Source: Entomortierella parvispora E1425
Lineage: Eukaryota > Fungi > Mortierellomycota
Direction: 5' to 3'
Assembly: GCA_020891255.1 (NCBI GenBank)
Contig: BQFW01000013.1
Span: 930,001 to 994,000, forward strand
DNA: 64,000 nt
Positions 39,010 through 63,511 of this stretch are shown one piece after another (the first letter of the stretch is position 1; every line of letters begins with the position of its first letter). The notes under the pieces were generated by a model. The model saw only the letters and a program-made list of their open reading frames with translations, was not told where the DNA came from and did not search any database. The translations under genes and the position numbers were made by a program.

Positions 39010-41783
39010 ATGGCCTGCTCATCTGTCCGCTCCGCCGTCGTTGACAAGGTCACCGCTGCCCCCATAACGACCTTGGCTCGAGGCATCCTCCCAAGGACCT
39101 CTCGGTCCTCAACCACATCCGCCCCTAGGGCGACCTCATCCCCCATACTCTCTTCGACCTCACCACTACCCTCACCACGGCCGGCCTCACAGAACCTGAT
39201 CCGGACTTCTTCAACTGCGCCTGTCTATTCTGTTTCCTGGCCAACCCACTCTAGTTCAAGCTCAAACGCATCATCACCACCCACGGCGCCGGCAACTGCC
39301 TCTACGATCACCTCAAAACCGTCCCCCGCAGTCGTGTCTCCTTCACGGTCAAACAGATTCGTACCGAGGAACAGGAGATCCTTGGTACAGTCCCAGTCCC
39401 CCTTCTGTTGTGTTCATGTTCATTGTTCCTTCTCCGTGCTGGCAATGCTCCCAAAGTAAAGAGAAAAGGAAGGAATGGATGTACTGACAATGCCCTTGTT
39501 GTTTTCCCCTCCTTGTCTATCCCCTCCTTCAAACAGACATCTGCGGGAGGCCATAGTAACAACTGGGCAATCTTGTTTCCAGGTAAGAAGAAAAAAGAAG
39601 GGAAAAAAAAAAAAGTAGAAAAAGATCAAGAAGTCAAGGGAGCGGAGGGAGGAAGGAGTGATCGATGATGTCGGCCCTGTATGTCATGGTTGGACAATGC
39701 AAGGCTGGTTGCAGCCAACCGCGAACTAAAACAAAGAAAAAGGACGCATCTCCTCCCACGAGGGGTGCAGCAAGCGACAGAACGAGGGGGATTTTCAAAG
39801 GGACTACGATGTAGGGGACACAGAACACAGGGGGAGAGGGACAAACCCAAATGCCGAAAAAAGAAAACTGTGGGGAAAGGTCGCACCGCTAGCCATGGTG
39901 ATGACACGGCTGCCACTTTATAGTGCGGATAGACGGATACGTAGTGGACGCTTTATTGCCGTCATGGCAAGTCCCCCTCTGGTGCATCTCCATCGGGATG
40001 CTGGCAACCTGGCAACTGGACAACTTGACGGACAGTCAAGATCTGGATGGACAATGTTGGGTAAACGACCTCCAGTGGAAAGAGGAGAAAAGGAAAAAAA
40101 AAGAGGAGTCATCAAGGTTCAGCGTGGGCGAATGACTTGACTTGTTTGTGCAGTGGGACGACCGCACCTTCCTAAAGGGGACCAGCCGGACCTCTAAACC
40201 TTGACGGGTCCCCTCTGTGGTTGCGTGTTTGCTTGGCCTTACCTTCACCTAGTCTTTTGCTGGAGGGTGCCGGTGTGGAGAAAGGGACCTTGTTCGCTGG
40301 ACGGAGAGAGAAACCCGGTGGACCAACAAGAGCCAGAGCCCGTGTGCATTGTGGGCTTGCTGGCCGGAAATATTCTCACGATCTAGGATTTTTTTTATTT
40401 TTGCAACACGAGCTTTTGACTCTGCTCCATCGATCTTCCTTTTTGCCTCGCTCCCTTTTGTCCTGGATCGGGGAGCGTGGGGATGGGCAAGTGGATCGAA
40501 AGCAATTGAGCCACGATATTAACCATTGCTCTTTTTCAATGTCGACATTTAGGTCAAGGCTCGCAGTTTGTTGGGATGGGCAAGGACTTGTACGACGCCT
40601 ATCCTGCGGCACGTCAAGTCGTGGACGAGGCCGACGATGCCCTTGGCGGCACGCTAAAGCATGTCATGTTCGAAGGCTCACAGGAGGATTTGACTCGGAC
40701 AGAGAATGCACAGCCAGCTATTTTGACCACATCCATTGCGATGCTGCGTGTGTTAGAGCTGGAACGTGGATTCAAAATCGAAGACTCTTGCAGATATGCT
40801 CTCGGTCATTCTCTGGGTGAATACTCTGCTCTGGTGGCGACAAAGGCCGTGACCTTGCAGGATGCTGTGAAACTAGTGGTAAGTTTTGCACCTTTTTTTT
40901 CCTTTTTTTTTCTTTCTTTTTTTTTAGTCCGTTGCAATCACGTTGTCATGCGAGTATGATCTAGAAAATAGTCATTAATGCATCTCTCTGCCCTGCTGTT
41001 CATAGAGGTTAAGAGGAGAGGCAATGACGAAAGCCGTGACCAACAAGGGAACCACAGCCATGTCTGCACTTGTTGTTCGATCCTCAAAACTGGAAGAGCT
41101 GGTGAAAGCAATGGAGGAGATTCGTGAGACTCTACCCTCTGGCGAGCTTGCCGAGATTGCCAATATCAACAGCGTAAGAGACTGGGAACCTCTAAAGCAA
41201 TTATCATGTAGCGGCACAGAGTTCTAACAACATGCCCATCCCTTGTCCTTTAGTCTTTCCAAGTTGTCATCAGTGGAACAGTTCGCGGCGTGGACCATGC
41301 TTCCAGAATGTTGCAGGCTCGCAAGATTGCGGCTCGTGCTGTTGATTTGCCCGTTTCTGCACCTTTCCACTGCAGCTTGATGCAGCCAGCTGCCGATGCC
41401 ATGAGAGAGGCCTTGAAAGATGTCGAGTTCAAGAAGCCCACCATCAGCGTCATTTCTAACGTCACTGCTAAGCCTGTAAGTGGAACGATCATGTAGCGGT
41501 GTTCCATCTTGACTCAACGTATGTTTGGATCTCTTGCTAACAACAACGTTCGTTCACATGGTATTAGATTGAAAATGTCGAAGATATTTCAGATCTGCTG
41601 GTCAGACAAGTGACAGGAACAGTTCAATGGCACACCAGCATTGCGTATCTCCGGGAGCAGGAGGACGTTCATGATTACATCTCTTTGGGACCCGGCAAGG
41701 TCCTTGCCAATTTGCTCCGCAAAGAATACCCGACCGACTTTGTCAAGACCGTCACGACTGCATCCGACATCGAACAGTGGTGA
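39010..41783 (+). CDS. MCT1: Mitochondrial malonyl-CoA:ACP transacylase (FabD-like), multi-exon with long N-terminal extension
   Basis: WAILFP G|QGSQFVGMG spliced across intron 39583-40552; TENAQPAILT; GHSLGEYSAL catalytic motif; VSAPFHCSLM; GPGKVL. Confidence 0.92.
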
Positions 41784-42153: not shown

Positions 42154-44427
42154 ATGTATAGCTCATCCTCCGCGGCCTCAGCCTCGGCCTCATCCCCCAA
42201 CCCAGCAAATGCTCCTGCCGCCGCTTCTCCGTCCTCATCTAATGCTGGACCGGCGGTGACCCCACCGACATTGGGCTACTTTTGTGTCTATAACCCAGAC
42301 TTTGGTCCAACCGATGAGACTCAGCATGAGCAGTTGCTCTACTATGTGGCACGCAAGACCGTGTCGATCGATGCAAAGATGCGCAACATTGGACTGGCTC
42401 AGGGACTTGTTAATTTCGCAAGGTCAGGACCGCATGCGATGAATTACAGAGGAAAAATGGAATGGAATCCTTGTGATGAATTGCTGGTTTTTCTGTTCTG
42501 ACAACTCTCTTTGCTCTTGCTTTCAATAGGATATTCTCACCCAACGCACCCTGCGACAATGTACATTCACAAAAGAATCGACTCGTCTTTCTAGAGGCAG
42601 AACCAGGATATTGGTTGCATATGGTGCGTTTTCAGGAAAAAAGGAATCAGTACCCCTGGAGAGGGCCGGCCAACTCAGCGGTCGACTCGCTCATCCCTTC
42701 CTGTCTCTATCTTTAGAAACTAATGGAAACCTCGTTATCCTCTCCTTTAGTCCATAGAGCTAGGCACGACCAAGCGGACAGTCAAGGGAGCGGACGGCAA
42801 ACATCGAACCATCACAGAATATTTAGATCATGAGGTTCACGACACGGTATTGGCCGCATTATTGAAACAAGCTTATGGGATGTTCAGGGTTGCGCATGGC
42901 ACCATGGATGGAATTGTTCAAGCACACGAGGGCAACACTCGGCCTTTACAACGACTGTTGGAGGAGTTTTTCGAACCTTGGGTTCTGGGCTGGGATTTCG
43001 AACGGTCCATGACGTTGGAGGTGGCTTTGGACGGGATCAGCTATTTGCCCTTGTCACGGACGGGTTATTTGGGCGTCGATCGGCTCGTCAAGAGCGTGCG
43101 GGAGAAATTCGGGCGGGATGCTTCGGAAAGCGAGGACAAGGACAAGGCGTCCATGTTGACTCATTATATGGTCACGTTTGAGGATCTGCTGGTCTCGACA
43201 GATATTCGGGATGAAGATATGAAGGCGGTTTGGAAACAAGTCGTGAACCTGACAGGATACGAGGGTGCGAGCGCTATGGCGGCATGGGAACGCAAGGAGG
43301 AAGAGGAGGCCAAAAAGCGCAAGGTGAGGACGAGATTGTAATTGGCACCCAATGCTTTAGACTGAAATGCTGTCTCCGTTTTGCTGATCTTTTTTTTTTT
43401 TTTTTTTTTTTTAACCGTTTTGAACTTCAATATCGCACAAAAAGTCAACGTTCAAGTTTGGAAAGTCTTGGTCCAATTCGAGTATCTTTGGATTCTATCG
43501 GTCGAACCCTTCGACGACAACACCTCCCTCAACACCTCCTTTCCGGCCCATATCGCGTGTAAGTTCACCCGCACCGTCAATTCGAAGCGTGGATGGAGTT
43601 ACTACCACCAACAACCACAGTACGAACAATGGCGGGACATTGAGCACACTTAGCCTGGGTGCACCTGCATCAGGCTCAAGTCCTCGGCCCTCAGGAGATT
43701 CTGAAGTCATATTGACAACTGGAGGCAAGGCTTCTGTGAACCCTCTGTGGTTTGGCGAGTTTATTGCAAGCGAGGATGTGGACGAGCATTTTGGAATCTT
43801 GTACAAGGTAGAGTGGATGCTTTGTACCTTGTAGAAGTCATTTAGGTCGGCATCGATACTCTCGTGCTAACTCTCTGTTCCCATTGTTTGTATAGCACGG
43901 AAGTGGATTGAACCTCTCCTTCTTTGTGCCAGTGCATAGCGCTGAAGCACAAAGGTTGTTGGATGAACCAGAACAATTCTCACGAGAGTTGGAAGAGTTT
44001 TTGTCTCAGCTCTTGGAGGATCATTTGCCAGCCCCCTTGGAGAGCACAGGACCCGACGGTCCAAACTTTGTGGCACCCAGTCGGTCAGTACTGGAGGAAG
44101 TTTCGCGTCAGGTCATAAAGGATGCGATTACGGCACGGACTCTGGGAGGATCGCTTGCGAACGATAAAGAGATCCGGTTCTTGTACTTTAACAAGATGAA
44201 TTTGGCTATCAAGGCGCAGTTGGGATCTACTACAGGAAAGGGAGGCATCAATATGAGCTCTGATATGGCCTTGTCTTTGCTCGATATCAAGCAGGACTTT
44301 GACAGGTAAGCTGGCTGCTTGTATTTGGATGGCAGGTCATTCAACTCTTCCCCAGCTTCGCCCATTTTTGTTATTTTTTGTTTATTGCCCGACTCTATGT
44401 CTGACCTTTTCTGTGATTTTGGACGGT

Positions 44428-47696: not shown

Positions 47697-49352
47697 AGCA
47701 AGAGGAGTTCAGGACAAAGAAAAAGAGAGGCCAAGACGCCTTGGAGGAAAAAAAGACGAAAAGGATAAACATACAAGATCAACAGACGAAGTAATTGTAA
47801 GACATGGATTCTACTCGAGGCCGCAACATCCTAGCTCATAGAATGGCGACGACGGTGAAGGGGGAGAGGGTGAAAGTGGGGCAGAGAGGTCCTTCTACTC
47901 GTTTGAGAACGCAGCCGAGGATGATGAGTGGAGGATAGGTTGGATCACATGCTGGAGAAAGGGGGTTGTCCCAACTTCAGGCCAAGGCTGAGACAATGAA
48001 TGGAGAAGTGAAGCGCCAGACAGATCGCATGGATGGTTTATACCAAAAGAGGGATGATCTCCCAGACACAGCACTAAGCTGCTGGAAACAGACAAAAATG
48101 TGCACGATGCTCTCTCTTGGAAAAGCGCTTCGGTGGTAGGCGCTGAGCTGCACAGGCCCTTTGCAAGGTGAACGAGATGCTCGAATTGACAAATAAAAGG
48201 GATGCGTGCCTCCACCTGTCCCCCACAGCCTTTCACTTTCTTGGCATCCTTATCCCTTCACCCAAAGATCACCCCTACAACAACACACCTTCTGCACTCC
48301 ACACTTCAAGGTATGTTTGACAATGGTCCTAGCCGCCATTCAAAATGTATTGTTTTTATTGTTTACATCAGTACTTGCTCAATGGCCATGCCTCTGAAAC
48401 TATTCTGTTTGTTCAAAAAGGACTTAGGCAAAACTAAATGAGTTGATTCGCCCTTCTTCCTGCCAATGTCCATGTGCCCCAAGAGTACCAGGAAAGGAAC
48501 CGCATGATGCAAATCAACTAGCGTAATAAATAGGGCGGCGAGGAATACGAGTGTCTGCTTCATGTCATCTGGCAGAGCAACACCTCATGCACTTTTGCTT
48601 TGTCGCTCGCAGGAGAGCCAGGTCGTTACGCCATCCAATATGCCACTTCATCTGGAGGTACCAAAACCACGAAAGAACAATGCCTGAATATCGGCTGGCT
48701 TATGACCTGGACGGTGGATGATTGTGCAGTAAACGGGCACACCCACATCTTGAAGGACGACAAGAACAGGTACGGAGATGGCAACTAGTTTAAGGTGCTT
48801 CATTTCGAAGGGAGGCCGCATGGTGGATACTTCAAGACGACAGAGGAATAGATCCACTAAGGTTAGTGCAGCCCACTTTGATACAAAAAAAATATCGTAT
48901 GTGAGAAGTGCAGAACAAGCAGAGGCAATGGGTTACAGCACGAGTTCCACCCATTGGATCTGTTGGGGCGTCGATGCGGCCATCGCCTTGCGTGCAGCCC
49001 ATCATAGGAGCAAATTTCTTCCACTGGTAGTCGCCTCAGCCTTCCGATCGACCCATTGCGTAGCTTGCGTCCATCTCCAAGCCCACCTCCTTTCTTTTTA
49101 TTTCCTTTGCAACGTTGCCGTATGCCTTTTTTTTTTTTTCCTTTTCCGCTCCAACGCTCCCATGCGATCTCTGGTTGTCCAGGAGCAACGGAGATCCAGG
49201 ATTTCTTACGGATAAAAATGACTACACGAGAATCTTCAAAAAGCCCTTCCCAACAGCCCAAAGATCACATATAAAGGGCCGTCCATCACGTCCCTCCAAC
49301 TGCAATTCAACGAAACAGAAAACAACAACAAAAACAAGGGAGAAAAAAAAAC

Positions 49353-51661
49353 ATGATTGCCCTCATCACACCCACTTGTCCTACCCCAAAGGCCACCACA
49401 GAGACTCCGGTTTTGATCTCTGGCGCAGGACCCACAGGCCTCTTTGCAGGCATTCTTCTTGCCAAGATGAACATTCCCTGTCGGATCATTGAGCGCGAAT
49501 TTGAGATCTCGCCGCTCTCCAAGGCCCTGGGCATCCATGCTCGAACCCAAGAGATCTTGGACATGACAGACCCCAGCTTGCTGCAGGAATTCATGGATCA
49601 GGGCTTTATGATGCCCAACATTCATATCTACTACAACGGTAAACTCGCCGGCGAAATCAAAGCCCTCCCCAACAAGGAGTCCCACTTTAAAAAGGTCTTG
49701 TACCTGATCCAAAACAAGACGGTCAAGATCCTCGCAGACGCGTTCGAGAAGGCATCCGGGACAAAGGTCGACCGCGGATGGGAGCTGATCGATACAAAAG
49801 TCGTCGAGGGCTCTTCTGCAGATGGCGATTCTTGGGTGGAGACGACGATGAGAAGAGCAGTGGTAGGAACGAACAAAAGAGCGGGCGAGGCGAATCAAAT
49901 CTTTGGCACCCTGGAGCTTGTAGAGGAGGATGAAGAAAAGCGATACGAGTACGAGGTCGTCAAGTCAAGGTACCTCATTGGGGCCGATGGAGGCCGATCG
50001 GCAGTGCGACACAAGATCAACATGCCGTTCCCAGGAAGGACACGAAACGTCAATATGATCATATTTGACGGCATCCTGGACACGACCATCGACCTCGAGA
50101 AAATGAAGTATGTGGTCGATAGAACTCGACATGACATCTATCACCCACTCCAATGGTTGGATTCTAACGTTCGTCTGTTCTTCTACAGTGTGATCAACGG
50201 GAATGGCCATCGGTTGGTGGCTATGCTCCCACTAGGCGAAAAGGACCGTGTTCGTATCGTCTTTGTCAAGGGCTTCCTGGAACCCGAGGAATTCGAACTT
50301 CAGAAATCCAAACCCATCATAGTTGAGGAGTTTCAACAGATGCTGGACGACGCAGTGAGTCCTCTGCAATTGAAGATCACCAAGGTCAACTGGCTGACAT
50401 ATTATCGCGTCAACGAACGTCGGGCTCAGGAGTACTCTTATAAGGGACGGATATTTTTGGCAGGTGATGCAGCCCATGTACACTCACCCGCCGGGGGTCA
50501 GGGCATGAACACTGGTCTTCAAGATGCTTATAACCTGGCGTGGAAGATGGCGATGGTAATTAATGGCACAGCACCGAGCACTTTGTTAAACTCTTACAGT
50601 GAGGAACGAACAGCCATCGGTGACGAGATCATCCAATTGTCATCCGAGTCGCTGGAGGGTATTTGGGCTGGTAACTTGATCCAGCGTTGCGTCAGGCGCG
50701 TGGCCGTTGCCCTGGCACCTATCATCTTGCGTCTCGTAGCGAACAGAGCGCCCAAAATGTCCATGGTAAGGTGGATAGCCTCAGTGACAAAACGGCCATT
50801 TTCATCTACAGGGGGGATCATTTCCATCCGGGCTCCACATACTAAAAAATCATGCTTGGATTTCGAAAATCTATTTAGCTTGGCCTTCGCTACTATGAAA
50901 GCTCACTGAACAAGAGCCACAAGACTCAAAAGGCCTCAGCCTCCGACGTAGGAGCGATTGGTTGTCGTGCTCGTGACGGTCCCCTTGTGCCGTTTCTTGG
51001 TCGTATTGACAGTGGCCATAACAGCGATAGCGAGTCTAGTCATATCAGCAATGGACCCACGGACACAAGCGGGAAGGAAGGCGAAAACAGAAGCAACAAC
51101 AGCGAGAGCGATGAAGGCAGCAACTACGACCGCCACCACAGCCGCACAGCCAATAATATGACTAGCGATGACACGGTTCGACTGCACGAGCTCATGGCTC
51201 ATCCAGGAGTCTTTCAAATTCTCGTGTTCACTGGAAACCTATGGAAGCATCGACCCGCCGCTGCTTCTGAGCTTGTGCAGTCTCTAGAACACTACCTTGC
51301 AAAGTGGCGGTCAACGTGGCCCTCTTCCGGAAGTCTTCCCGTCGAGTCCAACGAGAATAAGGAATCTCTGCGCCCCCAATTCATGGTTCACGTCCTGACA
51401 ACCGTTTCAGCTTCCGAAGCTGCAACAGCTGCCCAGTTCTTGGCAGCGCGCAGGAATGTTGTCGGTGAAGGCAAAGTGCATACAGATGTGGGGAAGATGT
51501 TGCACAAACGGTACGGGATCGATGCTGCTGCGGCAAAGAACGAAGGCAAGGGTGCAATCGTCGTTATTCGACCAGATTCCCATATTTCGTACCGAGTTCG
51601 GGGTGTAGGTCAGAGCGCATGGGAGGATGTTCATGGGTACTTTGAGTCCATCTTGATCTAG
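49353..51661 (+). CDS. FAD-dependent aromatic monooxygenase (PheA/TfdB/phenol-hydroxylase-like; FAD_binding_3 plus C-terminal thioredoxin-like domain), copy 1, 3 exons
   Basis: VLISGAGPTG; YLIGADGGRSAVRH; IFLAGDAAHVHSPAGGQGMNTGLQDAYNL; C-terminal VVIRPDSHISYR...YFESILI*. Confidence 0.92.
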
Positions 51662-52251
51662 ATACCGTGGCCAATTGGGTGGTCCAATTGACATCGGTTA
51701 CACCCACCCGCGGAGTCATGACAATAAAATGAGAGCACAGAAAAAAAAAAAAAAAAAAAAAAAAAAGGAGAAAAGAACTCGACTGAGAGTAGAAGAGAGG
51801 AGCCAAGTCGATTAACAGTTCCCGGAAAGTTTCTAGAGATGGATGACCATTTTGCCCTTTGTCAACTCAAAAATGAGGGGAAAGAGTTCCACGTTTTTCT
51901 TGTGTGCGGAGGCAAGGAGAGAAGAAAAGTTGAGAGCTGGGCATAGGCGAAACGGAGAAGGACGGACGGACGATGATTTTTGGTCAAGTGAGAATGACGA
52001 TGATCTTGGCTTGCCGCAGAATCCTGACCCCAAACCCGACGGTATTATTTCACGGTAAGAGAACGACGCAGCAAATGAGTCGACACAGACTGAAAGAGCA
52101 CAAAAAAAAAAAATTGGGAGCGTGGCACAAAATTGAGAGATGAGGGGCCTTCTTTGCCTCTGGGCGGTGCAAAGTTCTATTGTCTTTCCTCTCTCTCTCT
52201 CTGTCGGCACAGAAAAGAGGCGAGGACACATGGGTGGCAGGGCAAGGGCAG

Positions 52252-52315
52252 GGTCAATTGACCAGGCACCAACGGCCTTGCCGCTGCAGTTAAAGACTCT
52301 CCATAAGTATAAATA
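52252..52315 (+). promoter_or_regulatory. Putative promoter of His-rich ORF 1: palindrome GGTCAATTGACC (52252-52263) and TATAAATA (52308-52315)
   Basis: The perfect 12-bp palindrome lies 45 nt upstream of a TATA box, and a near-identical element lies upstream of the paralog. Confidence 0.5.
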
Positions 52316-52478
52316 CATCGACATTCCTCACTTTTCGCTTTTCTTTCTTTCTCTCTCTTCATCCTCATATCAGAACTTCAGATCGACACTCACATCCCCT
52401 CTCAAACTCTCGCAAACGTTTCAGCGATCCACCACGGCGCCCACAACTAGAAAAGCAGCTTCTTCAACAACCTCATCA

Positions 52479-52991
52479 ATGGTTCCTGAGTCTCCCCGCC
52501 ACAACCACAACCACAACCACAACGAGCAAAAAGTAGCCGAGATGAACCCTATGGCTTCAAAGCTCCACCATTCTATCGAAAGCGAGTACCAGTTGCCCTT
52601 TGATAAGATTGCAACCATGGACTCCCACAGCATCCATGCAGAGGCATTGTCCGAGAAGCTGCAGCAGTTGAAGCAGGAGCAGCAACTCGGTCAACAGCCC
52701 AACGGTCGTCATTCGCACCACGCATCGTCGTCCTCTCGTCATAATCATCGCCATGACGAGCACAGCTCCACTTCTGAGAAGAAGTCACCCCATGACGCCC
52801 TGCAGGCCATTCTGAACCGGATTGACAAGCAGCACCAGGAGAAGGAGCTCGAGAAGGAGAAGGAGCGCGAGTTGGAGGCCGAGCTTCTTCGTCGTCACAA
52901 CCACCCCCGCTTGAGCCCAGAACTCATCCGGGACCATCTTCACCACACGCTCAAGCAGAACCATGGAAACGCCAACCTGCGGCACAGCTGA
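52479..52991 (+). CDS. Uncharacterised His/Gln-rich small protein, paralog 1 (170 aa, intronless)
   Basis: TATA box and pyrimidine-rich leader upstream, strong C/G-ending codon bias, and two conserved blocks shared with 62896-63333. Confidence 0.8.
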   Translation: MVPESPRHNHNHNHNEQKVAEMNPMASKLHHSIESEYQLPFDKIATMDSHSIHAEALSEKLQQLKQEQQLGQQPNGRHSHHASSSSRHNHRHDEHSSTSEKKSPHDALQAILNRIDKQHQEKELEKEKERELEAELLRRHNHPRLSPELIRDHLHHTLKQNHGNANLRHS

Positions 52992-53629
52992 CGAGACGTT
53001 CACTTTTTTTCCATTTTAAATTCCTTTTCACTTCTTCTGCCCCCGCTTTCTGTTGGCAGAGTGAACTCACAACTATACCCAAAAAAAAATCCCTCCCTTC
53101 GCTGATCGTCTTTCAGCTGCAAAAAAGGAACCCTTTTTTTTTGTATGAGATTCCGCCCGCGCGATCTCTGCGCAAAAAAAAACAACCAAAGCAAAAAAAA
53201 AAAAGAACCCCCTTTCTCTGGTGCCTCTTAGTTTAGTTTACTTCCACCATTCTTTTCCTTTTTTTTTTTTCTCCTTTTTCTTTTGCGCACGCGCAACATT
53301 GCCACGCTGCGGCGACGACCATTTCCCCTCTCATCTGATCTTTTCAAGAGAGAAATGAAAACGCTTCGGGCTTAGCCTGACCTTGACGACGGCAATTTTG
53401 AAACAAAAAAAAACATGTATTTGTTCAGAGTGCGCAATAGCTATTTAGACAAATGACCATATCTTTTTTTTTCTATGACGTTCCCACAACGCAATAGCGA
53501 TGGAGGGGGTTCGGTTCAACGAGAAAATAACGCGAAAAGAAAGAAAAAAATAAAAAGAAAAGTGATCGAAATGAAATGTACACGCGTCAAGGGGAACTGA
53601 CGCGAGGGTTCTTGAGGTGCGTGTTTTTT

Positions 53630-55852
53630 TTACAAGATGATGGACAAGAAAGCGGACTGAAGGTTATAAAGCTGATTAGTGCTCTGGAATAGGTACAAGC
53701 ACCCAAAGAGAAGGGATAGCATGACCAAACTTGAGATCCCCTGGGACTCGGGCACCGAAGACAAAAATTTGGATGAAAAGGACGGTGAAGAGTGATTTCC
53801 GTTGGACGACGGAAGAAGGGTATATGGGTTGCTGTGGCTGTTTCTGCGTTTTGATGACCACTTTTTAGAACCAGAGGGTCCTTTTGACTTTGTCGAGAGT
53901 TGGACGTTGCTTCTGTTCCACGTTCCTGTTTGTGAGGGACTGGTTGAAATGGATGAAGAGGTCGAAGAAATGATCTGGGCTGGAGATATTGAATGCTGGC
54001 GGTTTTGTTGGGGCATCTGTCGACAGGAAAGGACGGGTGGATGTGTCTGTATGTTATGAGACTCGAGACATATTGGTTCCAGCTCTTCAGAGCATAGCTG
54101 TCGCGTTGGATGTTGCTGAAGTGGCTCGAGCGACCGCTGCTGTTGTTCTTGCAATGATCGAATCTGTCTCCTCCGGCTGCGATTATTCCTGTCCCGGATC
54201 ATGGTCCAGTAATCCATTTCTTCCGTTACGTCCTCGACTCGATCCATCTTGTCACTGCCACCATGATCGTCCACCTCCACTGAATCCTCTCCCTCTAATC
54301 TCTCCATACCAAGCTCCAACTCCTCCAGTCGCCTCGCAGAATACAGATCAGACTCAGAATAAGAGGAGAGAGCACCACCGAGTTTTTTTTTCCTGTCCTT
54401 CAAGCCAGCTTCCGTGAGACCCAGACCATCTTCTGTAACAGTGCTGGCTCCACCACCCAGCATGCCCTCATACCACGAGCTAGGCCTCCTTTTCTGATCT
54501 ACACCATTCGCTCTCAGCGACAATCCTGTCGACAACATCGCAAAGGATGACAAGGACCGTGCCCATGGTACATTGATCAACCTCCTTCCGCCTCCCACCT
54601 TTTCTTCCTCCTCTTCCTCCCGAGCCGTCATGACCCTACACTGAGCAAGGTTGGAACTCACTTTGGGTCTCGCCGACCACCCCTTATTGGCCTCTGTTCC
54701 AAAGCCTGTTCGCTTTGGTAGTGCGCCAGTGGAAGGTCCAGGGGCTCTTGGCATCTCTGCTCTCAGCCTTCCATACTGGATCAACTCGGCTTGGGTCATA
54801 ATCATCTTCATGAGCACGTAGCGTCGAATCGGCTGATGCGAATGTAAATGATGAGCTGCGTGAACGTACATCCTCGCGAGATCTGATTCTGAGATGGTCG
54901 AAAGAAGCTGTGCTGACATGACGGGATTCGGCAAATGTGCCAAGGATTGGGAGTATGGTCGCTGTTGACGATGTCGACATTTCGAAGGAGATGGCTGACG
55001 CGCCGTAGGGAGAGCAGGGTCCTCCAAAATCGCATTAGGCGCAATTGACGCGTTCAATGCAGAAGTCGCGATGGCGGGTTGCGAAAACCAGGCAGATGTT
55101 TCTGTGGGGGGTGTGGTAGGCGAGGGAAGCTGCATTGTCCTCTTGTTGCTGTCATTGGAGCATTCTGGAATGCAGAGGGATGGAAGTAAACAAGGTAGAG
55201 CACGCGGTTTGGCCACCGCTGGAGAGGATGCAGACACATCTGTAGCCAAGGAATCTTGTTCAAGATGAGGGGACACGGGTGAGGGCAGTGAGGTTGATGG
55301 AAACGAGGACGAGGACTGAGTGGTCACCGTTAATTCTGGCTGAGGGTGATGGTGATGGTGATGATGCACATACAGATGGATCGCTAGGCTCGAGGGGGAC
55401 TCAGCTGGGGAGGTAGGGGTAATTGGAGGCGAGGGGGGCAAATGCTCCTTGGCTTGATGAGATGAGGGCGGCGTTGGTCGAGGAAGAGAAGCCAGCAATG
55501 GTTGCTGCAGATGCGAGTGCAATTGCTGCTGTTGCTGCCGCAGCTGTCTTAACCTCTGTTTGGATTCAGCCGATATTTGTGCATGGGAGGTCTCTCTGGC
55601 CTCTGTCGCGCCTTCACGGCGACGGCGATCGCCCTGTCGATGCTGTTGCTGGGGACCGTTCATGATCATCTCGTGATAAGTGCTGTCCAGATCCGTGTTT
55701 TTATCGACCCTCACCCTTGTTGCGTGGCCGCATGGATGAATGGCCGACTCTGCCTCCACCGAAGCATCCACGACGCCATCCCGGTTGACGCAGTCCAGGA
55801 ACATCTGTGCCCGCGCAGAGCGAGGCACTGGTGCACTGACAACAGGTAGCAT
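53630..55852 (-). CDS. Uncharacterised 740-aa low-complexity (S/P/Q/H-rich) protein with C-terminal hydrophobic segment
   Basis: Uninterrupted 2.2-kb ATG-started ORF with a poly-His tract, an internal helical block (DLARMYVHAAHHLHSHQPIRRYVLMKMIM) and terminal LVMLSLLFGCLYLF. Confidence 0.75.
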   Translation of the reverse strand: MLPVVSAPVPRSARAQMFLDCVNRDGVVDASVEAESAIHPCGHATRVRVDKNTDLDSTYHEMIMNGPQQQHRQGDRRRREGATEARETSHAQISAESKQRLRQLRQQQQQLHSHLQQPLLASLPRPTPPSSHQAKEHLPPSPPITPTSPAESPSSLAIHLYVHHHHHHHPQPELTVTTQSSSSFPSTSLPSPVSPHLEQDSLATDVSASSPAVAKPRALPCLLPSLCIPECSNDSNKRTMQLPSPTTPPTETSAWFSQPAIATSALNASIAPNAILEDPALPTARQPSPSKCRHRQQRPYSQSLAHLPNPVMSAQLLSTISESDLARMYVHAAHHLHSHQPIRRYVLMKMIMTQAELIQYGRLRAEMPRAPGPSTGALPKRTGFGTEANKGWSARPKVSSNLAQCRVMTAREEEEEEKVGGGRRLINVPWARSLSSFAMLSTGLSLRANGVDQKRRPSSWYEGMLGGGASTVTEDGLGLTEAGLKDRKKKLGGALSSYSESDLYSARRLEELELGMERLEGEDSVEVDDHGGSDKMDRVEDVTEEMDYWTMIRDRNNRSRRRQIRSLQEQQQRSLEPLQQHPTRQLCSEELEPICLESHNIQTHPPVLSCRQMPQQNRQHSISPAQIISSTSSSISTSPSQTGTWNRSNVQLSTKSKGPSGSKKWSSKRRNSHSNPYTLLPSSNGNHSSPSFSSKFLSSVPESQGISSLVMLSLLFGCLYLFQSTNQLYNLQSAFLSIIL

Positions 55853-57429
55853 TGGGCTCTTCTTTTTTCTTTTCCGTTGACCGTCCTGATCTGCGATCTG
55901 TGGTGTGAAGGGTAATGCAGGGAGAGGGAGAGGAGCGACAAGGTGAGTGCTTACACCGAAGCGCCGAGTGGTTGCGGAAGAAGAGAGCGAGGGACGATGA
56001 GTTTCTACCTCGTCGACACTTGGAGGTCTTCGAGGTCGGGGTATAATGGCGGTGGCGTTAAAAAAAAGTCGTTGGGGTGTTGCCAGTGCGCGTTACAAAG
56101 GACAAGGGAGAGCCCGACAGGAACAGTCCTGGAGAGGAAGAGGGAAAGGAGCAGAGTGGGGATGGGGGAGAATAAAGGAGCAATGGAGACGAGCATTGAT
56201 TCCATGGTGGGAATGTTCCATCCACATTCAACCCGACATGGTGGATCTTTATTATTATTTTTTTTCTGTTCTCTTTTTTGGATTTCCTAAGCATGTGCCG
56301 TTGATATGCTCAGAAGAGGTCTTGTCGCGTGCAGAGACAGGGGGACAGGATCCCTCAGTGCGAATGGCCTGTGGTCGAAGTGCAGTGATCCAGTGTACCC
56401 TCTCTGCCCCTCTCCTTCCCCTTCAAGTCCAAGGCAGGTTCAGTCTCGTCCGAGATGCAACCAACAAACGAGAGGCGGCAGGACGTGTGGGTGAATTGGC
56501 CAGGGCAAGGACAGGGCAGGGAGAAGGGCCTTTGATTCCAATCTTGTCCTTCGCTTTTTTTTACATGAGCGGAATGTGGGTTCTTTTGGTTTTGATTGAC
56601 ATCAGGTTGCACAGGCTGGTCATGCCCAAACATGCAAAGCAGGGTGGTACTGCAAGAGGAGTTCAGCTGTGACAGGGCCATTCTCTTTTGTCAATGTCCT
56701 TGTCGAAAGAAAGGACATGAGACCAGTGTGGCCATGTCCTCTCTCCCTCTCTCTCTTTCTCTCTCTCTCCAAGTCTGATTTCCGCGACGTTGAAAACAAA
56801 ACAGTGGATCTCGACTTGTTTTTGGCCATCTGTTTCTTTCACTTCCCAAGAGTGCACCGAGGAGCATGTGGGCAGATCATCGCGGACAAACAAAAATGTC
56901 TTTATTGCATCTCATGGATTTCACTGCTGGGGGCCACCGAGAAGAAGAGCGGAAAAGGACTGGGGCCATAGTCTGGTTGAAGAGGATCAGAAGGGTGAGA
57001 TGCAGGGTTGACCTGAGTTCCGAAGATATTATCCTGGGTCCAGGGGAAGGGCGTAGCAAGGAGAGAACACAAGGAGCCCTTCGGATTAGAAATGACAGAA
57101 CTCGGCACCGTACCTGCGGTCTCTCTTGCTTGGATTCGGCTTTCTGTGGTCTATTAGGAATCTGTTTCTGTCTGCTCCGATGATGATTTTGGTGCGTAGC
57201 TCTGCTGGGATCCTCTGCCTGTGGCCATTGTTTACTCGTTTGCAGTGCTTCATACGATCCTGCTGAGAGCAGAAGGAAGACCCACCCGCCATCGTAGCAT
57301 ACTGTTCTTGTTTTGTCATGGCCACCAGATCAAGATGACAACCTGATAGATCCTGGCGACAGCTGAGACGAGAAAAGTCGAGTTTTTCTTTCCACTGTTG
57401 TGCAGTGTCCGCCCGATTACATCTAGATG

Positions 57430-58575
57430 ATCCTGAGTACTTGAAATCATGATATCCTACTGAAGGAATTCCGTCTGCAAATGCTGGACCTAGTCAACGA
57501 GCCGCTACAAAAACTCCTACATCCAAGATCCTGATCTTGTCAAACTAGCTCGTGAAGCATCGGAAGAGTACCTGAAAAATTACAGGTATTAATATGTAGT
57601 AAGCACGGCCATCAGTGTTTGATAGCTCTCTGTCGAGAGTGGCACTCGGACTCAACCTTCTGATAGTGTCCAAGAGGAGCAGTAGCGAGGAGGAATGCCT
57701 GGAGCGAACGGTGGATATGAAGAGACATGGGCATTGACATGACATCAGCCAACAATGAAGATGGGTTGACCAGTTGTCACGGCTCCAGCCGCAGGGTTGG
57801 TGGCAACAAGCGGGTGGCTTTTCCCACAAGGCATTTCGCGAAATGAAAAAAAAAGAGATCTCTCGCGACGAGTGAATATCTACCTTATCGCACTTGCTAC
57901 ATCGCAGTAAATACGATTTTAGGTAGAAATCTTCCTTAAATCGCAATTGCTGCGACCCCAAATCGTGCCATCGGTGCGCGTTACAAAAAATCTCCGCTCA
58001 ACTTCATTCATGCGTCCTTGTCCAACTGCCTTGGTACTTTCGTGGAGTGGCTATTGTGCGCCACCAATCCAGTCCACCCGTACGACTCCCAAAACACGGA
58101 CCTGCGACTTCCGTTCCTTCTCGTCTCCTTGATTGTCTTGACCAAGTCCCCAACTCTGCGTGTTGGCGCGCCTTTCAAAGAATCAGGCGAGAATGAACGC
58201 CCAGATAATCGCCCGGCACCTGACAACGGCATGACATCCTTCAGAACGGACTTCCAAGCGGCTGGTATGTGCCCATGTCCACTGGATCCTCGAGCGAGAC
58301 TTGAGAGCCTGAACTGTAACATTTTCTCTAATAAGACCGTTTAAAACCAAATCGGGTCGTCAGGCGCCTCTGTTCGTCGTCAACCATTCGCAGGACGATG
58401 CTGTCACTCTTCAAGGACAAGGTATGGGACCTTTGTCGGGAGGCTGAAGCCTGCCGCAACTGACCTCCTTATTGGAAAAGTTCAGACAACAGTGCCTTTG
58501 GTCCCTCCGACACGTTTACAGACCCGGTCTTTCTTGTCTTCAAGGATGCCGTCATCGCTTTCGGGAAAGCCTAGC
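57430..58575 (+). pseudogene. Possible decayed coding sequence (fragments separated by stops and frame changes)
   Basis: Protein-like fragments ILLKEFRLQMLDLVNEPLQKLL, QDPDLVKLAREASEEYLKNY, MSNCLGTFVEWLLC... and MLSLFKDKVWDLCREAEACRN*PPYW...DPVFLVFKDAVIAFGKA*. No family recognised. Confidence 0.25.
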
Positions 58576-58592
58576 GTGGCGCCCCATCTGCT

Positions 58593-60188
58593 TTATTTCA
58601 CAACGTGCAGCTCCACTTCATGCCTGACGCCGACATCATGTTCCGACAAGATGGTCCACAGGCCGCGATGTATGTCGGCGGTGGGGTGGATCACACCGCG
58701 AAGGGTTTTCAACCGAGGCCAATGTTCCGAGATCCAGCGGACATCGTTCTCGTCCATTTTTTGGTTCGTGTCAAACAGCATCAACGTCTCTAGGCATCGC
58801 ATCGTGCCAAGGAGGTCCAGCCCTTGGGAGAGCGACAGTTGCAGAAAGGACAGGTCGCTAGTCGTTCGATAGTTTTTGTGCATGGGCCTGGTCATCGTCC
58901 TTGAAAAGTCCCAGTATTTCAGTTGACTCAAAGTGGCCAGTCGTGTCAGGATCATACTCTGGGAAGAAGGTTTGACCAAGTCGATACATAAAACTAACTT
59001 TGTCAGCCCCAAACACACCCAGGGTCGCGGATCATTCTCAATGTCAACGTCCTGGAGCCATGGTGCGTAAAGGACCTCCAACTGAGATAGCTCACAGAGG
59101 ATCTCTTGCACCCAAACTCCTTTCATCAGCGTGGATTGGTGAAGGTTCAGGACACGAAGGGAGGAACAGTGGCGTCCTTGAACTATACGCCAGGAAGGTT
59201 CTCCAAACCAGGAACTAGAATCCAACGCTAACCCTTCCAATGAGCCATCCGCTCGAGACTCAAGAAATGGGAGAATCTCGTCCTCTCGACTCGCATCCAA
59301 ACTTAAACGGATGCTGCGGAGCTTCGGGCAGAGTTGCGCCATGTCAGCAAAAGTGTTGCCAATGGGGAACTGATCGCCTGTCGTTGCGCCGTTGCTTCTA
59401 TAGAAGGAGAGGTCGGGATACCATTCAAACTTTTCCAGATCGGGACAGAGTCTTAGGAACTCCAGCTCGTCTTCCAAACAACTAAACCCCGCAATGTTGG
59501 TCAACATCAGCTCCTTGATTTTTGTTGGAGGAAGAGATCCAAAGTGAGATGCTGCTCTGGGGCGATCATGGTTGTCTTGGGTTAAGGAGATAGATCCATC
59601 GCCGTTGGGTATATATAATTTGACCAGCAACAAGCGCAGTTTCCTCAACCGCGACCAGACAGATGAACAAAGATCCCAGTCTTCTTCTGCAACAATCCCT
59701 TCGGTGACTGCCAACATCTCCAGCAATGGACAGGAAGCTGCAGCTTCCCAAGAGTCGTGGCTGGTCTTTCCATTGTATGTTTCTTGTCCGTAGGTTACAA
59801 TGTCAAAGGACAGCTCAGTGAGGGTCTCTTGAAACTGGCGAATCACCAATGCTTGAGATCCTTGCTCCCATTGACGGATGGTCAGGACCTGTAATGTGGG
59901 GCAGGCAACCTGCTGCAGGAAACCATTGGCGCCTCCGTAGGTGTCTAGTCTCTGAATAAATTCAGCATTGCGGACAAAGGTTGAGAGTGGAACCTCCTTG
60001 GTGTTGATCGTCCAGGCACTGTGCGAGACGAGTCTTAGTCTTTGCCAGATCCACGGTTGAAAAGACCTGTTCCAGTCGCGCGAAACACAGGCGCAGACGG
60101 TGAGGTCATGTCGATTCAGGAACTTTGCCAAATGCTGTCTTATCTCTGGTAGGTCCAGTGGATGATGGGATGATGACATTGGGGGCAT
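58593..60188 (-). CDS. F-box / LRR (RNI-like) protein, intronless, of the type expanded in Mortierellaceae
   Basis: HPLDLPEIRQHLAKFLNRHDLTVCACVSRDWNRSFQPWIW F-box, leucine-rich repeats, PWVCLGLTKL and LQLSLSQGLDLLGTMRCLETL C-terminal motifs. Confidence 0.9.
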   Translation of the reverse strand: MPPMSSSHHPLDLPEIRQHLAKFLNRHDLTVCACVSRDWNRSFQPWIWQRLRLVSHSAWTINTKEVPLSTFVRNAEFIQRLDTYGGANGFLQQVACPTLQVLTIRQWEQGSQALVIRQFQETLTELSFDIVTYGQETYNGKTSHDSWEAAASCPLLEMLAVTEGIVAEEDWDLCSSVWSRLRKLRLLLVKLYIPNGDGSISLTQDNHDRPRAASHFGSLPPTKIKELMLTNIAGFSCLEDELEFLRLCPDLEKFEWYPDLSFYRSNGATTGDQFPIGNTFADMAQLCPKLRSIRLSLDASREDEILPFLESRADGSLEGLALDSSSWFGEPSWRIVQGRHCSSLRVLNLHQSTLMKGVWVQEILCELSQLEVLYAPWLQDVDIENDPRPWVCLGLTKLVLCIDLVKPSSQSMILTRLATLSQLKYWDFSRTMTRPMHKNYRTTSDLSFLQLSLSQGLDLLGTMRCLETLMLFDTNQKMDENDVRWISEHWPRLKTLRGVIHPTADIHRGLWTILSEHDVGVRHEVELHVVK

Positions 60189-60280
60189 GTGCAGTGAAAT
60201 GAGAGAGATGGGCAATTGCATTCTCTTGGCAACTATTTTTTTTTTATTGTTTGTCGCCATGTGGCAGTGTCTGTGTCCCT

Positions 60281-62387
60281 TCAGATCAAGATCGACTCGA
60301 AATATCCTTCCACGTCGCTCCACGCGTCTGCACCGACGCCCTGGACACGGAACGCGATGTGCGTGTCTGGCCGGATAACAAAAAGAGCCCCCTCTTCTCC
60401 TGTAACCTCCACACCGTAGCGACTGTGCAATAGCCCATCCACATCCACATACGCTTTCCCCTCACCAGCGCTCCTGAGTTCAAGCACGTTATCCCTTGTC
60501 TCTGTCAAGACTGTGAGGCTATGCATCATAAAAAGAGGCCCCCGACTAGCAGAGCTGGAGTTGCCCCCCTTACTTAAAGGCCATTTCGATCGCCATTGTC
60601 CAAGACGTTGATCCATCTCAGCAGCCAACTCAGATGCGGCCTCGGGTCTGCTCTGCCATTGAGTGCCGGTGAACGCCAGCACATGGAAAACTCCCGGGAA
60701 GGCCAACAGATCGTAGAGACGGACCTCGTTCTGATGAACACTGTCCCCTCCAAGAGCAACAGCGTTGTCGCCCTTTCGCACTGGGATGAGGATCGAATCG
60801 GCGGCACGCCGACCAATTGCGCCAGGTCCTGTCGGCGCGACTTGTGTCTTGTGAGTCTTGTTCAGAGAGTTTTCATAATAGCGAAGGCCAAGCTATTATG
60901 AGGATGGAGCTAGTGAGTGCACAGACGTCATGGAGCAAAAAAAAAAAAATGAAAGCGCCATTTTCCCGTGATTTTCTTACCATTGAAATTGCCGGTGGTC
61001 GATACGCCAAGATTGGCATGATAATGGGCAGGAAAGACAGAACGACCCGGATGGCCAACCTTTTGAAAAAATTGTGGTTGAGACCAATGCGCAGCTGGTT
61101 GGCTGAGGTGTGGATGATTTCATCTGCAATAGCGGGCCGCTCTTCCTGGTAAGAATCCAGAAGAGAGTGTGGAGCCGTGCCATTGATCACCATGGCCATC
61201 TTCCAAGTCAGGTTATAGGCATCTTGAAGACCAGTGTTCATGCCTTGACCTCCAGCAGGAGAATGGACATGAGCAGCGTCGCCTGCCAAAAAGATACGGC
61301 CCTTGTAACAGTAGTCTTTGGCTCGTCGTTCATTGACACGGTAATAAGTTAGCCAGTTCACTTTGGTGACCTTCATGCGAATCGGGAGCATGGTCTCGTC
61401 TATTAGTCGCTGGAAATGCTTCTGCGTCACTGTTTCGGATTTCTGAGCTTCGAACTGTTCCTCTGTGAGGATTCCATTATCGTAGATGATGCGGACTCGA
61501 TTCTCATCTCCGAGTGGAAACATGGCGACTGTGCGATTGAAGTTTCCACAGATCATCCTGTTCAAGATTGAAGGCTCGTCAGAACATGTTGCTCAAATAA
61601 AAAGAAATAAAAAAAAACGCCTAAAGGACAAGGAGACCTACACGACGTTGTCTGTCGAAATATCCGTATCAAGGAATCCGTCAAACAAGATGATGCTGTT
61701 ATCTCTAGTCAGGCCCTGGAACGGCATCTTGATCTTGTGTCGAACGGTCGATCGACCTCCATCGGCCCCGATCAAAAACATGGACTTGACAGTCTCGTAC
61801 TCGTATTGCTTCTCTGCATCCTCCTCCGCGAGCTCTGTGGTTCCCATCACTTTGCTCTCGTTCGCTCGTAAGTTTGTGCCCACAAGAGCCTTTCTGATTG
61901 TGGTCTCGACCCAAGAAGATTTTTCCTGTCCTTCTCCTTCCCCGTTGCCTTCGACGACTCGCGTGTCCATGAGCTCCCAACCTCGATCGAATCGTCCTCC
62001 AGCCTTTTCAAAGGCTTCACCCAAAATCTTGACGGTTCTGTTCTGCTCCAGGAGCAACGTTGTCTTGAATCGAGTGTCCTTGGACTCCATGGGGGGCATA
62101 TCGCAAATGATTTTGCCATTCATGTAGACTTGGACGCTCTTCCAAAATCTGCCCTGATTCAAAAACTGCTGGATCAAGGAGGGATCGGTCAGTTGAAGAA
62201 TCTCCAGAGTACGGGCATGGATGCTGACAGCTTTGGAGAGAGGCGACGTAAAAGGGTCACGCTCCAGGACTCGAACAGGGATGTTCATCTTTGCAAGAAG
62301 GAGACCAGCCATGAGACCTGTAGGTCCTGCACCACAGATCAGAACTGGGATCTCGGAAGTTTTTGTTTCCGGTGCAGTTGTAGCCAT
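60281..62387 (-). CDS. FAD-dependent aromatic monooxygenase, copy 2 (paralog of 49353-51661), 3 exons
   Basis: VLICGAGPTG; FLIGADGGRSTVRH; KVNWLTYYRVNERRA...GDAAHVHSPAGGQGMNTGLQDAYNL; same two intron positions and same terminal YFESILI*. Confidence 0.92.
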
Positions 62388-62895
62388 TATTGTTGTGCGA
62401 GCAGGATGTTTGGAGATGAAGAAAAAGAGGGATGGCGAATGAAGAGATGGGTTGGGAATGAAGGAATGGGATGAGAGTAGAATGAGATGAGATGAGGACT
62501 TCTTTCTCTCTTGTAGACGTCGCGTGGTTCGGCGCGTGCTCTCGACGTCCTTCCAGGCACACGGGAATCCATGGCAAAACAATGCGCCGGCATGAACGAA
62601 TGACATGCGCAGATAGAGAGGGGAAAGGAAGGTAGCTCTTCTCTCTCTCCTCTCCCTCTCTCTCCTCCTACCTACATCCCATTCATGGTTACACCTGCTA
62701 TTCTTCAAACTTTTTTTATTGTCATTAGGGTATGTACTTGAAGAGGATGCCAGGAATGATGATGCTTGATGATGCTAGATGACGTGCTGGGATATGAACC
62801 ACATGCTTTCATCTTTTTGTGTTTTTGGAAAGAGATTTGACGCTGTTGGGCTGGGCTTGGGCTGGGCGAGGCTAGACTTGTTTACAACGTGGCAT

Positions 62896-63333
62896 TTATC
62901 CATGGCGCAGGTTGGCATCTCCATGGTGCTGATTCATTGACCGCGCCTCTTTGAGGAAATCGGGTGTCAACCGCCTTGAATGGTGAGTACTCGGTGCCTG
63001 TTGCTGATGTTGATCGGCCTCATTCGTTGGTGACTCGACTGGGATAGAGCCGTTACTATCGTGTCGTTGTCTCTCCAGACGCCCAAGGATTTCCTTGATC
63101 GTGTCTTCGCCCCTCTTTTGCAGCTCGGGCGTCACCTGGAAAGATGCTCGCGTGGGCTGCTTTTCCGTCGTTGCAGATACTGTTGCTACCGTGACTGGAG
63201 TTGTTGAATTGTGCAGCATGTGTGCATTGGAGGCGCGGAAGTACGGCTCAGTTTGGCAGTGGAGATCGTGGTGGTGTTTTAGTGGGTGATCATGGTGGTG
63301 GACCCTGGAAGGCAGCTGTGTTGACGACGACAT
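62896..63333 (-). CDS. Uncharacterised His-rich small protein, paralog 2 (145 aa, intronless)
   Basis: TATAAAA at 63430-63424. Shares DTIKEILGRLERQ and RLTPDFLKE...QHHGDANLRHG* blocks with the 52479-52991 product. Confidence 0.8.
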   Translation of the reverse strand: MSSSTQLPSRVHHHDHPLKHHHDLHCQTEPYFRASNAHMLHNSTTPVTVATVSATTEKQPTRASFQVTPELQKRGEDTIKEILGRLERQRHDSNGSIPVESPTNEADQHQQQAPSTHHSRRLTPDFLKEARSMNQHHGDANLRHG

Positions 63334-63423: not shown

Positions 63424-63511
63424 TTTTATACGTGGAGACATGGGTGGGGCGAGGGGGCGAAGAAAAAAAAAGTTTCCGACACCATGCGGCACAGTCGACG
63501 GTCAATTGATC
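63424..63511 (-). promoter_or_regulatory. Putative promoter of His-rich ORF 2: GATCAATTGACC (63511-63500) and TATAAAA (63430-63424)
   Basis: 11/12 match to the palindrome upstream of paralog 1, about 70 nt upstream of the TATA box. Confidence 0.5.

Follow-up and report, generated by a model that had tools for sequence, protein, structure and literature searches.

Textbooks treat group A flavoprotein hydroxylases as single-component enzymes; their usual substrate is a phenolic ring, and in their phenol-hydroxylase branch the role of an extra C-terminal domain is debated. PHHY of Trichosporon cutaneum (1foh, 1pn0), 8r2u, 2dkh and VibO (7yj0) are built of two parts, FAD_binding_3 and Phe_hydrox_dim (PF07976, a thioredoxin-like C-terminal dimerisation domain), and we know of no dedicated small partner protein for any of them. 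Such partners are familiar from diiron systems: DmpM and MmoB, small subunits with a regulatory or effector role in the multicomponent phenol and methane monooxygenases of bacteria, belong to a type of folded, cofactor-free protein of ~10-16 kDa. In fungi, the gene for the secreted His-rich zinc scavenger PRA1 lies beside that of its zinc transporter, ZRT1, with which it shares a divergent promoter.

The window analysed here, 64 kb of one contig of Entomortierella parvispora, holds two PHHY-type flavin monooxygenases (FMO; phenol-hydroxylase-like), FMO1 and FMO2, each next to a small His-rich open reading frame, His1 or His2 (Table 1). The earlier note on this DNA had described these four features as two paralogous enzymes paired with two mutually paralogous small genes, and all of this is borne out. 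FMO1 and FMO2 share 56% identity across 475 aa of the FAD part, and 46% across the C-terminal domain. The FAD_binding_3 profile is covered from position 1 to 348 of 349 by FMO1, and at positions 2-124 and 213-347 by FMO2 when two exons are combined. A genome scan places FMO1, FMO2 and a third enzyme on contig C6 (FMO3, public model P0197, bearing PF01494) above the curated cut-off for Phe_hydrox_dim, so that the two-part build of the solved relatives recurs in all three. Read from the translations, the dinucleotide-binding GxGxxG near the N-terminus is GAGPTG in FMO1 and FMO2 and GGGPVG in FMO3, and all three contain the FAD-contact motif LAGD[AS]AHVHSPAGGQG. FMO1 is divided into three exons by introns near 50115-50190 and 50769-50878, as placed by tblastn of the public model P0047 and comparison with paralog models, and the public 644-aa model P0051 is identical to FMO2. 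On these profile and motif matches, for which the FMO exons were compared separately rather than as joined spliced models, FMO1 and FMO2 count as intact group A flavoprotein hydroxylases of the PHHY type. The public label of the predicted enzymes, 'phenol 2-monooxygenase (NADPH)', is an automatic name. Their best solved relatives by sequence are VibO (7yj0), the phenol 2-monooxygenases 8r2u and 1foh/1pn0, and 3-hydroxybenzoate 4-hydroxylase (2dkh), with matches of E 1e-28 to 1e-38 only, mostly over ~200 residues; unlike them, the enzymes of the Mortierellaceae, fungi abundant in soil and in association with plants, belong to a large lineage-specific expansion.

Table 1 Features of the 64-kb window, with the evidence or remark for each
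Feature	Position	Strand	Evidence or remark
Malonyl-CoA:ACP transacylase gene (Acyl_transf_1)	40528..41753	+	One of only two genome copies
Longin-domain gene (CCZ1/Intu-like)	42247..44375	+	Weak Pfam match on the ortholog of metagenome contig L015
Recent segmental duplication with contig C2	48125..52094	.	blastn, 89.5% nucleotide identity; C2 copy is P0047
FMO1, PHHY-type group A flavoprotein monooxygenase	49353..51661	+	Pfam FAD_binding_3 E 4.5e-63, Phe_hydrox_dim E 2.4e-11
TATA box (putative)	52308..52315	+	171 bp upstream of the start codon of His1; sequence read
His1, 170 aa, subfamily A	52479..52991	+	Open frame; family profile; dN/dS 0.21 against the ortholog on metagenome contig L013
FMO2, PHHY-type flavoprotein monooxygenase	60281..62387	-	Pfam FAD_binding_3, Phe_hydrox_dim E 2.7e-08; public model P0051
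His2, 145 aa, subfamily C	62896..63333	-	Open frame; family profile; 508 bp upstream of FMO2
TATA box (putative)	63424..63430	-	97 bp upstream of the start codon of His2

His1 and His2 are real genes as judged from the substitution pattern, because His1 evolves with an omega of 0.21 against an ortholog, and both frames are open, as the earlier note had it. BLASTP aligns the two proteins over their last 27 residues only (41% identity, E 6e-5); the family alignment adds a central helix motif, IL-x-R-[LI], to the shared tail HG-x-ANLRH. Members of the family are 90-330 aa long with 4-15% His, and combine two helices with otherwise disordered sequence. Their C-terminal element is near-invariant, consisting of [LI]-[NST]-P-[ED]-L-L-K, a spacer of 5-10 residues and L-[KR]-Q-x-HG-x-ANLRH-x. 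His1, His2 and the third member in this genome, His3, all carry HG-x-[AS]-N-[LI]-x-H near the C-terminus together with the upstream [LI]-[NST]-P-[ED]-L-L-K, and in 38 of 50 members a single residue follows the tail motif. The IL-x-R-[LI] columns of the central amphipathic helix are invariant in family alignments, and the least conserved parts of the proteins are the His-rich stretches. In the AF2 model of His1, helices 54-71 and 104-140 are confident (pLDDT 84-95 for the latter) and the remainder is predicted to be disordered. The N-termini are hydrophilic and, on reading of the sequences, carry no signal-peptide-like stretch; the conserved tail is single, with no repeats. The tail motif occurs in none of the FMOs.

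The predicted small proteins constitute a previously undescribed family, the named members of which all come from Mortierellaceae. HMMER over 1.84 billion protein representatives returned 39 family matches, and the homologs spread over about ten genera, those named being Mortierella, Linnemannia, Gamsiella, Dissophora, Entomortierella, Haplosporangium, Lobosporangium, Lunasporangiospora and Gryganskiella; unnamed matches are from metagenomes. Close homologs of each of His1, His2 and His3, with up to ~80% identity, were found in metagenome and sequencing-run assemblies, and for His1 also in Gryganskiella. The family divides into four subfamilies, and the public records retrieved label its members 'hypothetical' throughout. 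Pfam gave nothing meaningful for five members at E up to 0.1-1, a PDB profile search gave nothing below E 0.1, and the ESM Atlas offered poor models and no usable relative. A CsbD-like stress protein (PF05532) was considered and rejected, with no match for His1 and His2 (E up to 1), nor for His3 and two further members (E up to 0.1). The CsbD-like domain was seen only in P0141 of Mortierella sp. AM989, at the N-terminus of an FMO gene model.

Within each pair the genes lie on one strand, with gaps of 817 bp from FMO1 to His1 and 508 bp from His2 to FMO2, and the gene order is opposite between the pairs, in agreement with the spacing and orientation first described. A family profile search of the 38.9-Mb genome found exactly three members, and the third, His3, lies 317 bp downstream of FMO3, so that all three are 317-817 bp from an FMO. 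The whole genome has 14 Phe_hydrox_dim loci, which with 1 kb on each side amount to ~0.15% of its length. The linkage is thus above chance, since there are exactly three members and His3 too is FMO-linked; since duplication relates them to one another, the three pairs do not count as separate events. No small gene adjoins 11 of the 14 FMO loci, and no second FMO was found upstream of His2 past the end of the window.

The linkage extends beyond this genome, and the suggestion that it has been maintained holds more widely than the window in which it was made. Elsewhere it was read from locus-tag order, which assumes that tags follow gene order, and from contigs of equal size, with FMO lists comprising the best 120 of >200 hits. 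On this basis, 8 of 30 tagged homologs have an FMO within three genes, in eight other Mortierellaceae genomes and in all four subfamilies. Five of them are neighbouring (His/FMO tags BGZ83_008482/008483, BGX28_007445/007444, BGX30_004818/004819, BGX26_000130/000131 and BGZ76_003842/003843); BGZ76_003843 had been predicted beforehand as an FMO neighbour and was then confirmed to be an FMO3-type protein. The other three lie within three genes (BGZ51_000264/000266, BGX29_004973/004971 and KI688_003361/003358). By chance, ~0.07 such cases would be expected. Linkage is complete in the genome analysed here (3/3), and 22 of the 30 homologs have no FMO within three genes among the best 120 of >200 hits, four of these having one 6-15 tags away. 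Among the three contigs that a metagenome scan for the family yielded, L013 holds an orthologous pair with the order FMO then His1 kept, and L015 (subfamily A, Mortierella alpina-like) has no FMO within ~1 kb upstream or 4.5 kb downstream of its small gene.

In the gene trees, P0047 (the 85-93% paralog of FMO1) served as its proxy, and P0051 and P0197 represented FMO2 and FMO3. Distances between small proteins are partly congruent with those between partner FMOs (Mantel r 0.54, p 0.0007), in support of co-duplication. A recent duplicate of FMO1 has no small gene. The partner FMOs of subfamily A split over two separate FMO clades, and in Entomortierella and Gryganskiella the neighbour of this subfamily belongs to a different clade than in Mortierella while still being an FMO. 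Every one of the four subfamilies adjoins such an FMO in at least one species. The pairing of small protein and FMO is real and old, because it recurs in three pairs here and in at least eight other species.

Genes around the pairs indicate how the arrangement arose. The transacylase gene marks an old duplicated block: its second copy lies 1 kb from His3 on contig C6, so both copies sit beside His/FMO loci, as an ancestral duplicated block, one of the origins first considered, would have it. Synteny of the transacylase and longin-domain genes extends to the metagenome contigs L015 and L014, which bear a subfamily-A His gene. Taken together, gene order and tree comparisons show an old block duplication, in which the small gene and a PHHY-type FMO have been inherited and duplicated jointly since before the Mortierellaceae genera split; the ancestral block also held the malonyl-CoA:ACP transacylase gene and gave rise to the four small-protein subfamilies. 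The recent segment shared with contig C2 holds FMO1 and stops 385 bp before the His1 start, so that His1 was not copied, and the DNA flanking the C2 copy of FMO1 retains no trace of a His gene.

We favor, at a probability of roughly 45%, the reading that the small protein assists or regulates the neighbouring FMO or FMOs as a partner, a functional coupling suggested by gene linkage. The small protein would not itself be an enzyme. Its gene would be transcribed from its own TATA-box promoter; the TATA box before His1, kept at -186 on the ortholog contig L013, points to a separate putative promoter for this gene. The product would act in trans, in an accessory or regulatory manner, on the neighbouring FMO(s), the invariant C-terminal tail serving as a short docking motif, the helices allowing self-association and the His-rich stretches perhaps sensing metal or pH. 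Because the proposed action is in trans, extra FMO copies could exist without an adjoining small gene. Such a role would be of the same kind as that of DmpM and MmoB, in that a small non-catalytic protein that tunes activity is encoded beside a hydroxylase, although here the enzyme is a fungal single-component flavoprotein, the partner is mostly disordered and there is no sequence relation. The long evolutionary persistence of a His-rich small-protein gene beside one neighbour is reminiscent of PRA1-ZRT1; in contrast to PRA1, the tail proteins lack a signal-peptide-like N-terminus, are encoded co-oriented with the FMO and are not homologous. It is unlikely, in our judgment, that single-component group A flavoprotein hydroxylases have in the tail proteins their first dedicated partners, with the tail docking on the enzyme (e.g., on its thioredoxin-like C-terminal domain) and switching activity, stability or localisation by metal or pH sensed via the His-rich stretches. 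Counted against coupling were the 11 lone FMO loci, the C2 copy without His1, L015 without an FMO, the 22 homologs, the two FMO clades, the co-duplicated transacylase and the lack of a shared upstream motif.

The PHHY-type FMO family is strongly expanded in Mortierellaceae, and an orphan family that has travelled with FMO genes since the Mortierellaceae arose offers a concrete handle on it. If the two are functionally tied, the small protein would represent a novel kind of accessory factor and offer a route to the substrates of the enzymes; if not, the locus would be a clean, datable case of block duplication making recurring, module-like gene pairs. Either way, the small-protein family is new to Pfam.

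There is a substantial chance that the association is passive, an ancestral block of transacylase, small gene and FMO having been duplicated a few times with the small protein functionally unrelated to the enzyme. Neighbours could persist without shared function because gaps of 0.3-0.8 kb are seldom broken, and since the transacylase was co-duplicated too, block duplication alone can create recurrent neighbours. The transacylase and longin-domain synteny with L015 spans different genera, which marks the region as generally stable. The FMO1 duplicate on C2 without a His gene, the absence of an FMO near L015, the abundance of FMO genes in the genome (14 loci) and the seven upstream regions compared, which have no 7- to 9-mer common to all, fit this history. 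It accounts less readily for adjacency kept somewhere in each of four old subfamilies, for three members out of three still FMO-linked here though the order of pair 2 is opposite, and for the subfamily A neighbour that is still an FMO despite its different clade in Entomortierella and Gryganskiella.

A stress- or metal-responsive hydrophilic protein that buffers zinc, nickel, copper or protons, regulated together with the FMO or placed in one chromatin neighbourhood with it, and never touching the enzyme, would match the His content of 4-15%, the predicted disorder and the TATA boxes before His1 and His2, such promoters being typical of inducible genes; in Mortierella sp. AM989, moreover, another small stress-type domain (CsbD-like) immediately precedes an FMO, and the gene model P0141 joins the two. 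We consider this quite improbable, as conservation falls on the helix and the exact C-terminal tail, resembling a binding motif more than a bulk buffer, while the His-rich stretches vary most.

The earlier note had also raised the small protein as a peptide substrate, which we judge very improbable. A ribosomal precursor with a C-terminal core that the neighbouring FMO modifies would explain a small gene beside a tailoring-type enzyme and a conserved element at the extreme C-terminus, and ustiloxin UstA-type (dikaritin) precursors are likewise small ORFs near oxidative tailoring enzymes. Those precursors, however, have a signal peptide-like N-terminus and repeated, dibasic-flanked cores, whereas the tail proteins have a hydrophilic N-terminus and one invariant tail, a 'core' that is neither variable nor repeated and is not framed by a Kex2-type dibasic site. 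The tail offers no phenolic ring, because it contains no Tyr or Trp. The window encodes neither a large synthase nor any other large processing enzyme, since no ORF exceeds 740 aa, consistent with the backbone synthase having been reported absent.

That the small ORFs are frames open by chance, in intergenic DNA rich in His codons, as their low complexity and lack of a Pfam match might suggest, is refuted by the omega of 0.21, by an exact C-terminal motif and stop position kept in 50 homologs and by homologs in about ten genera.

Among those ORFs around the pairs that were compared with Pfam, a weak F-box match alone emerged. The F-box gene between the pairs was considered as a third component of the module and dropped; the position of an F-box gene downstream of two FMOs is probably coincidental, because the genome has at least 70 such loci, dense on contig C1.

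The 38.9-Mb E. parvispora assembly (20 contigs; genome announcement PMC8759367) holds three pairs of a group A flavoprotein monooxygenase (FMO) gene and a small His-rich gene. Two of them, FMO1–His1 and His2–FMO2, lie in the window, as the earlier note had described, with the opposite gene order (monooxygenase then small gene in the first pair, the reverse in the second) and the intact frames that it reported. In the third pair, on contig C6, FMO3 is followed after 317 bp by His3 in the same orientation, and a family profile search of the genome finds exactly three small-protein members. Because there are at least 14 Phe_hydrox_dim loci in the genome, a random gene would touch such a locus about 0.15% of the time. 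The linkage does not hold from FMO to small gene, since 11 FMO loci are without one.

Genes of the two pairs and of the adjoining block in the window
Feature	Position	Strand	Description
Malonyl-CoA:ACP transacylase gene	40528-41753		upstream of FMO1
Longin-domain gene	42247-44375		upstream of FMO1
FMO1	49353-51661	+	intact, intron-containing; Pfam matches of exon translations
His1	52479-52991	+	170-aa open frame
FMO2	62387-60281	-	intact, intron-containing; Pfam matches of exon translations
His2	63333-62896	-	145-aa open frame

The exon translations of FMO1 and FMO2, searched separately by reference, match the Pfam FAD_binding_3 profile along its full length and also the C-terminal dimerisation domain of phenol hydroxylases; identity between the two enzymes is 56% across their FAD portions and 46% across their C-terminal portions. 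FMO2 and FMO3 correspond to the public models P0051 (644 aa) and P0197, such full-length models being used for the trees, and the solved relatives nearest to FMO2 are VibO, phenol 2-monooxygenases and 3-hydroxybenzoate hydroxylase. All three are ordinary members of a known enzyme family. Beside His3 lies a cluster of four FMO genes (L011 526-10000 and L016 1-8705; G000:C6:1262500-1280700), two of which (near 1268k and 1271k) are inverted copies of each other, identical across the compared 246-aa block; a SAM-dependent methyltransferase ORF (L016 5365-6063) sits inside the cluster.

The small His-rich ORFs are real genes. His1 shares 76% identity with its ortholog on the metagenome contig L013 and is under purifying selection (dN 0.10, dS 0.50, omega 0.21). 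TATA boxes stand 171 bp before His1, where the box is also kept in L013, and 97 bp before His2. Neither His1 nor His2 matches Pfam, and the BLASTP alignment between them is confined to the final 27 residues (E 6e-5); a central helix motif and the HG-x-ANLRH tail are common to both. A word-indexed search found ten relatives, and a profile search, run exhaustively with HMMER over 1.84 billion representatives, found 39 members, all named ones being 'hypothetical protein' entries from Mortierellaceae genera. The family is undescribed and lineage-restricted. Its 52-member tree resolves four subfamilies, A with His1 (support 100), B with His3, C with His2, and D, which has the tail SHGNANLRHS and no member in the E. 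parvispora genome. His content ranges from 4 to 15%, and of 50 members 38 have a tail motif that stops one residue short of the C-terminus. AlphaFold2 (45-sequence alignment, pLDDT 67) predicts confident helices at 54-71 and 104-140 and little else, and searches of the PDB and ESM Atlas returned no relative.

The pairing extends to other Mortierellaceae. On L013 an FMO C-terminus is followed 754 bp on by the His1 ortholog, in the order of the first pair. Two further metagenome contigs, L015 and L014, each carry an M. alpina-like subfamily-A gene. Neither has an FMO match, over about 1 kb before and 4.5 kb after the gene on L015 and over the mere 1.3 kb that make up L014. For 30 members with positional NCBI locus tags, an FMO was sought on a contig of equal size, using two FMO searches (each the best 120 of more than 200 matches). 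Among the matches listed, an FMO lies at tag distance 1 for at least five members (BGZ83_008482, BGX28_007445, BGX30_004818, BGX26_000130, BGZ76_003842), at 2-3 for at least three more (BGZ51_000264, BGX29_004973, KI688_003361) and at 6-15 for at least four others. BGZ76_003843, the neighbour of BGZ76_003842, was predicted beforehand to be of the FMO3 type and then found (P0179). Given about 112 listed FMO-by-His combinations and genomes of some 10,000 genes, chance predicts about 0.07 cases within three genes, against at least eight observed. The eight are a lower bound, since only one to eleven FMOs are listed per genome; and because the cases are related by descent, the comparison should not be read as a probability for independent events. 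All four subfamilies occur among the linked cases, and this persistent pairing is likewise undescribed.

The linked FMOs are spread across the entire Mortierellaceae FMO tree, so the association is family-wide and not a property of one clade. The proposed comparison of gene trees shows partial congruence: over 11 pairs, patristic distances of small proteins and partner FMOs correlate (Mantel r 0.54, p 0.0007) and the B and D partners are congruent, and the A partners split over two FMO clades. In Entomortierella and Gryganskiella the FMO at the A locus clusters with the FMO2 type, which suggests that it was replaced, or gene-converted, from the neighbour 8 kb away; the small gene still had an FMO beside it afterwards.

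The His and FMO genes are co-inherited and co-duplicated. The small protein may have no enzymatic activity and instead assist or regulate the neighbouring monooxygenase(s) in trans; we put functional coupling of any kind at about 0.45. Quite possibly the small gene merely hitchhikes with the FMO. Besides the transacylase gene in the window, the genome has just one more (G000:C6:1259963-1260984), 1 kb from His3, so that the C13 and C6 loci have three gene families in common; the two transacylase genes, both beside His/FMO loci, are 79% identical in the compared exon, and on L015 the transacylase and longin-domain genes likewise adjoin the His gene. An old block duplication accounts best for this likeness. 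It supports the ancestral array that the earlier note had envisaged and, because the transacylase gene was duplicated too, shows that recurrent neighbours can arise at these loci without shared function. A recent 4-kb duplication (window 48125-52094 to L018 2061-5976 on contig C2, 89.5% nucleotide identity) copied FMO1 and left out His1, its boundary falling 385 bp ahead of the start codon of the small gene. That the small protein buffers stress or metals without contact to the enzyme is unlikely. The peptide-substrate role, one of those first suggested, is highly improbable, since the tail is single and invariant and lacks a phenolic residue, repeats are absent and the N-terminus is hydrophilic; the interpretation of the earlier note is supported in part, for the paralogy, the maintained linkage and the ancestral block.

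Several other features adjoin these genes. A stretch of about 28 A occupies 51741-51768, 80 bp past the FMO1 stop codon and within the segment duplicated to C2. Between the two pairs, a predicted 740-aa open frame (53630-55852, minus strand) is rich in Ser, Pro, Gln and His, with a seven-His run, and has no Pfam match above threshold. FMO2 is followed immediately downstream by an F-box/LRR-like gene (58593-60323, minus strand), and an FMO on contig C1 is followed in the same way by a paralog of that gene (G000:C1:2580826-2582148), a placement that is probably coincidence because the family has 97 exon-level matches in the genome (roughly 70 or more loci), dense on C1. The public FMO model P0141 (Mortierella sp. 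AM989, BGX27_005423) carries at its N-terminus a stress-protein domain of the CsbD-like kind (E 1e-17), which is either a small CsbD-like gene just upstream that was merged into the model or a true fusion. Small hydrophilic proteins of a second kind therefore also occur next to these FMOs.
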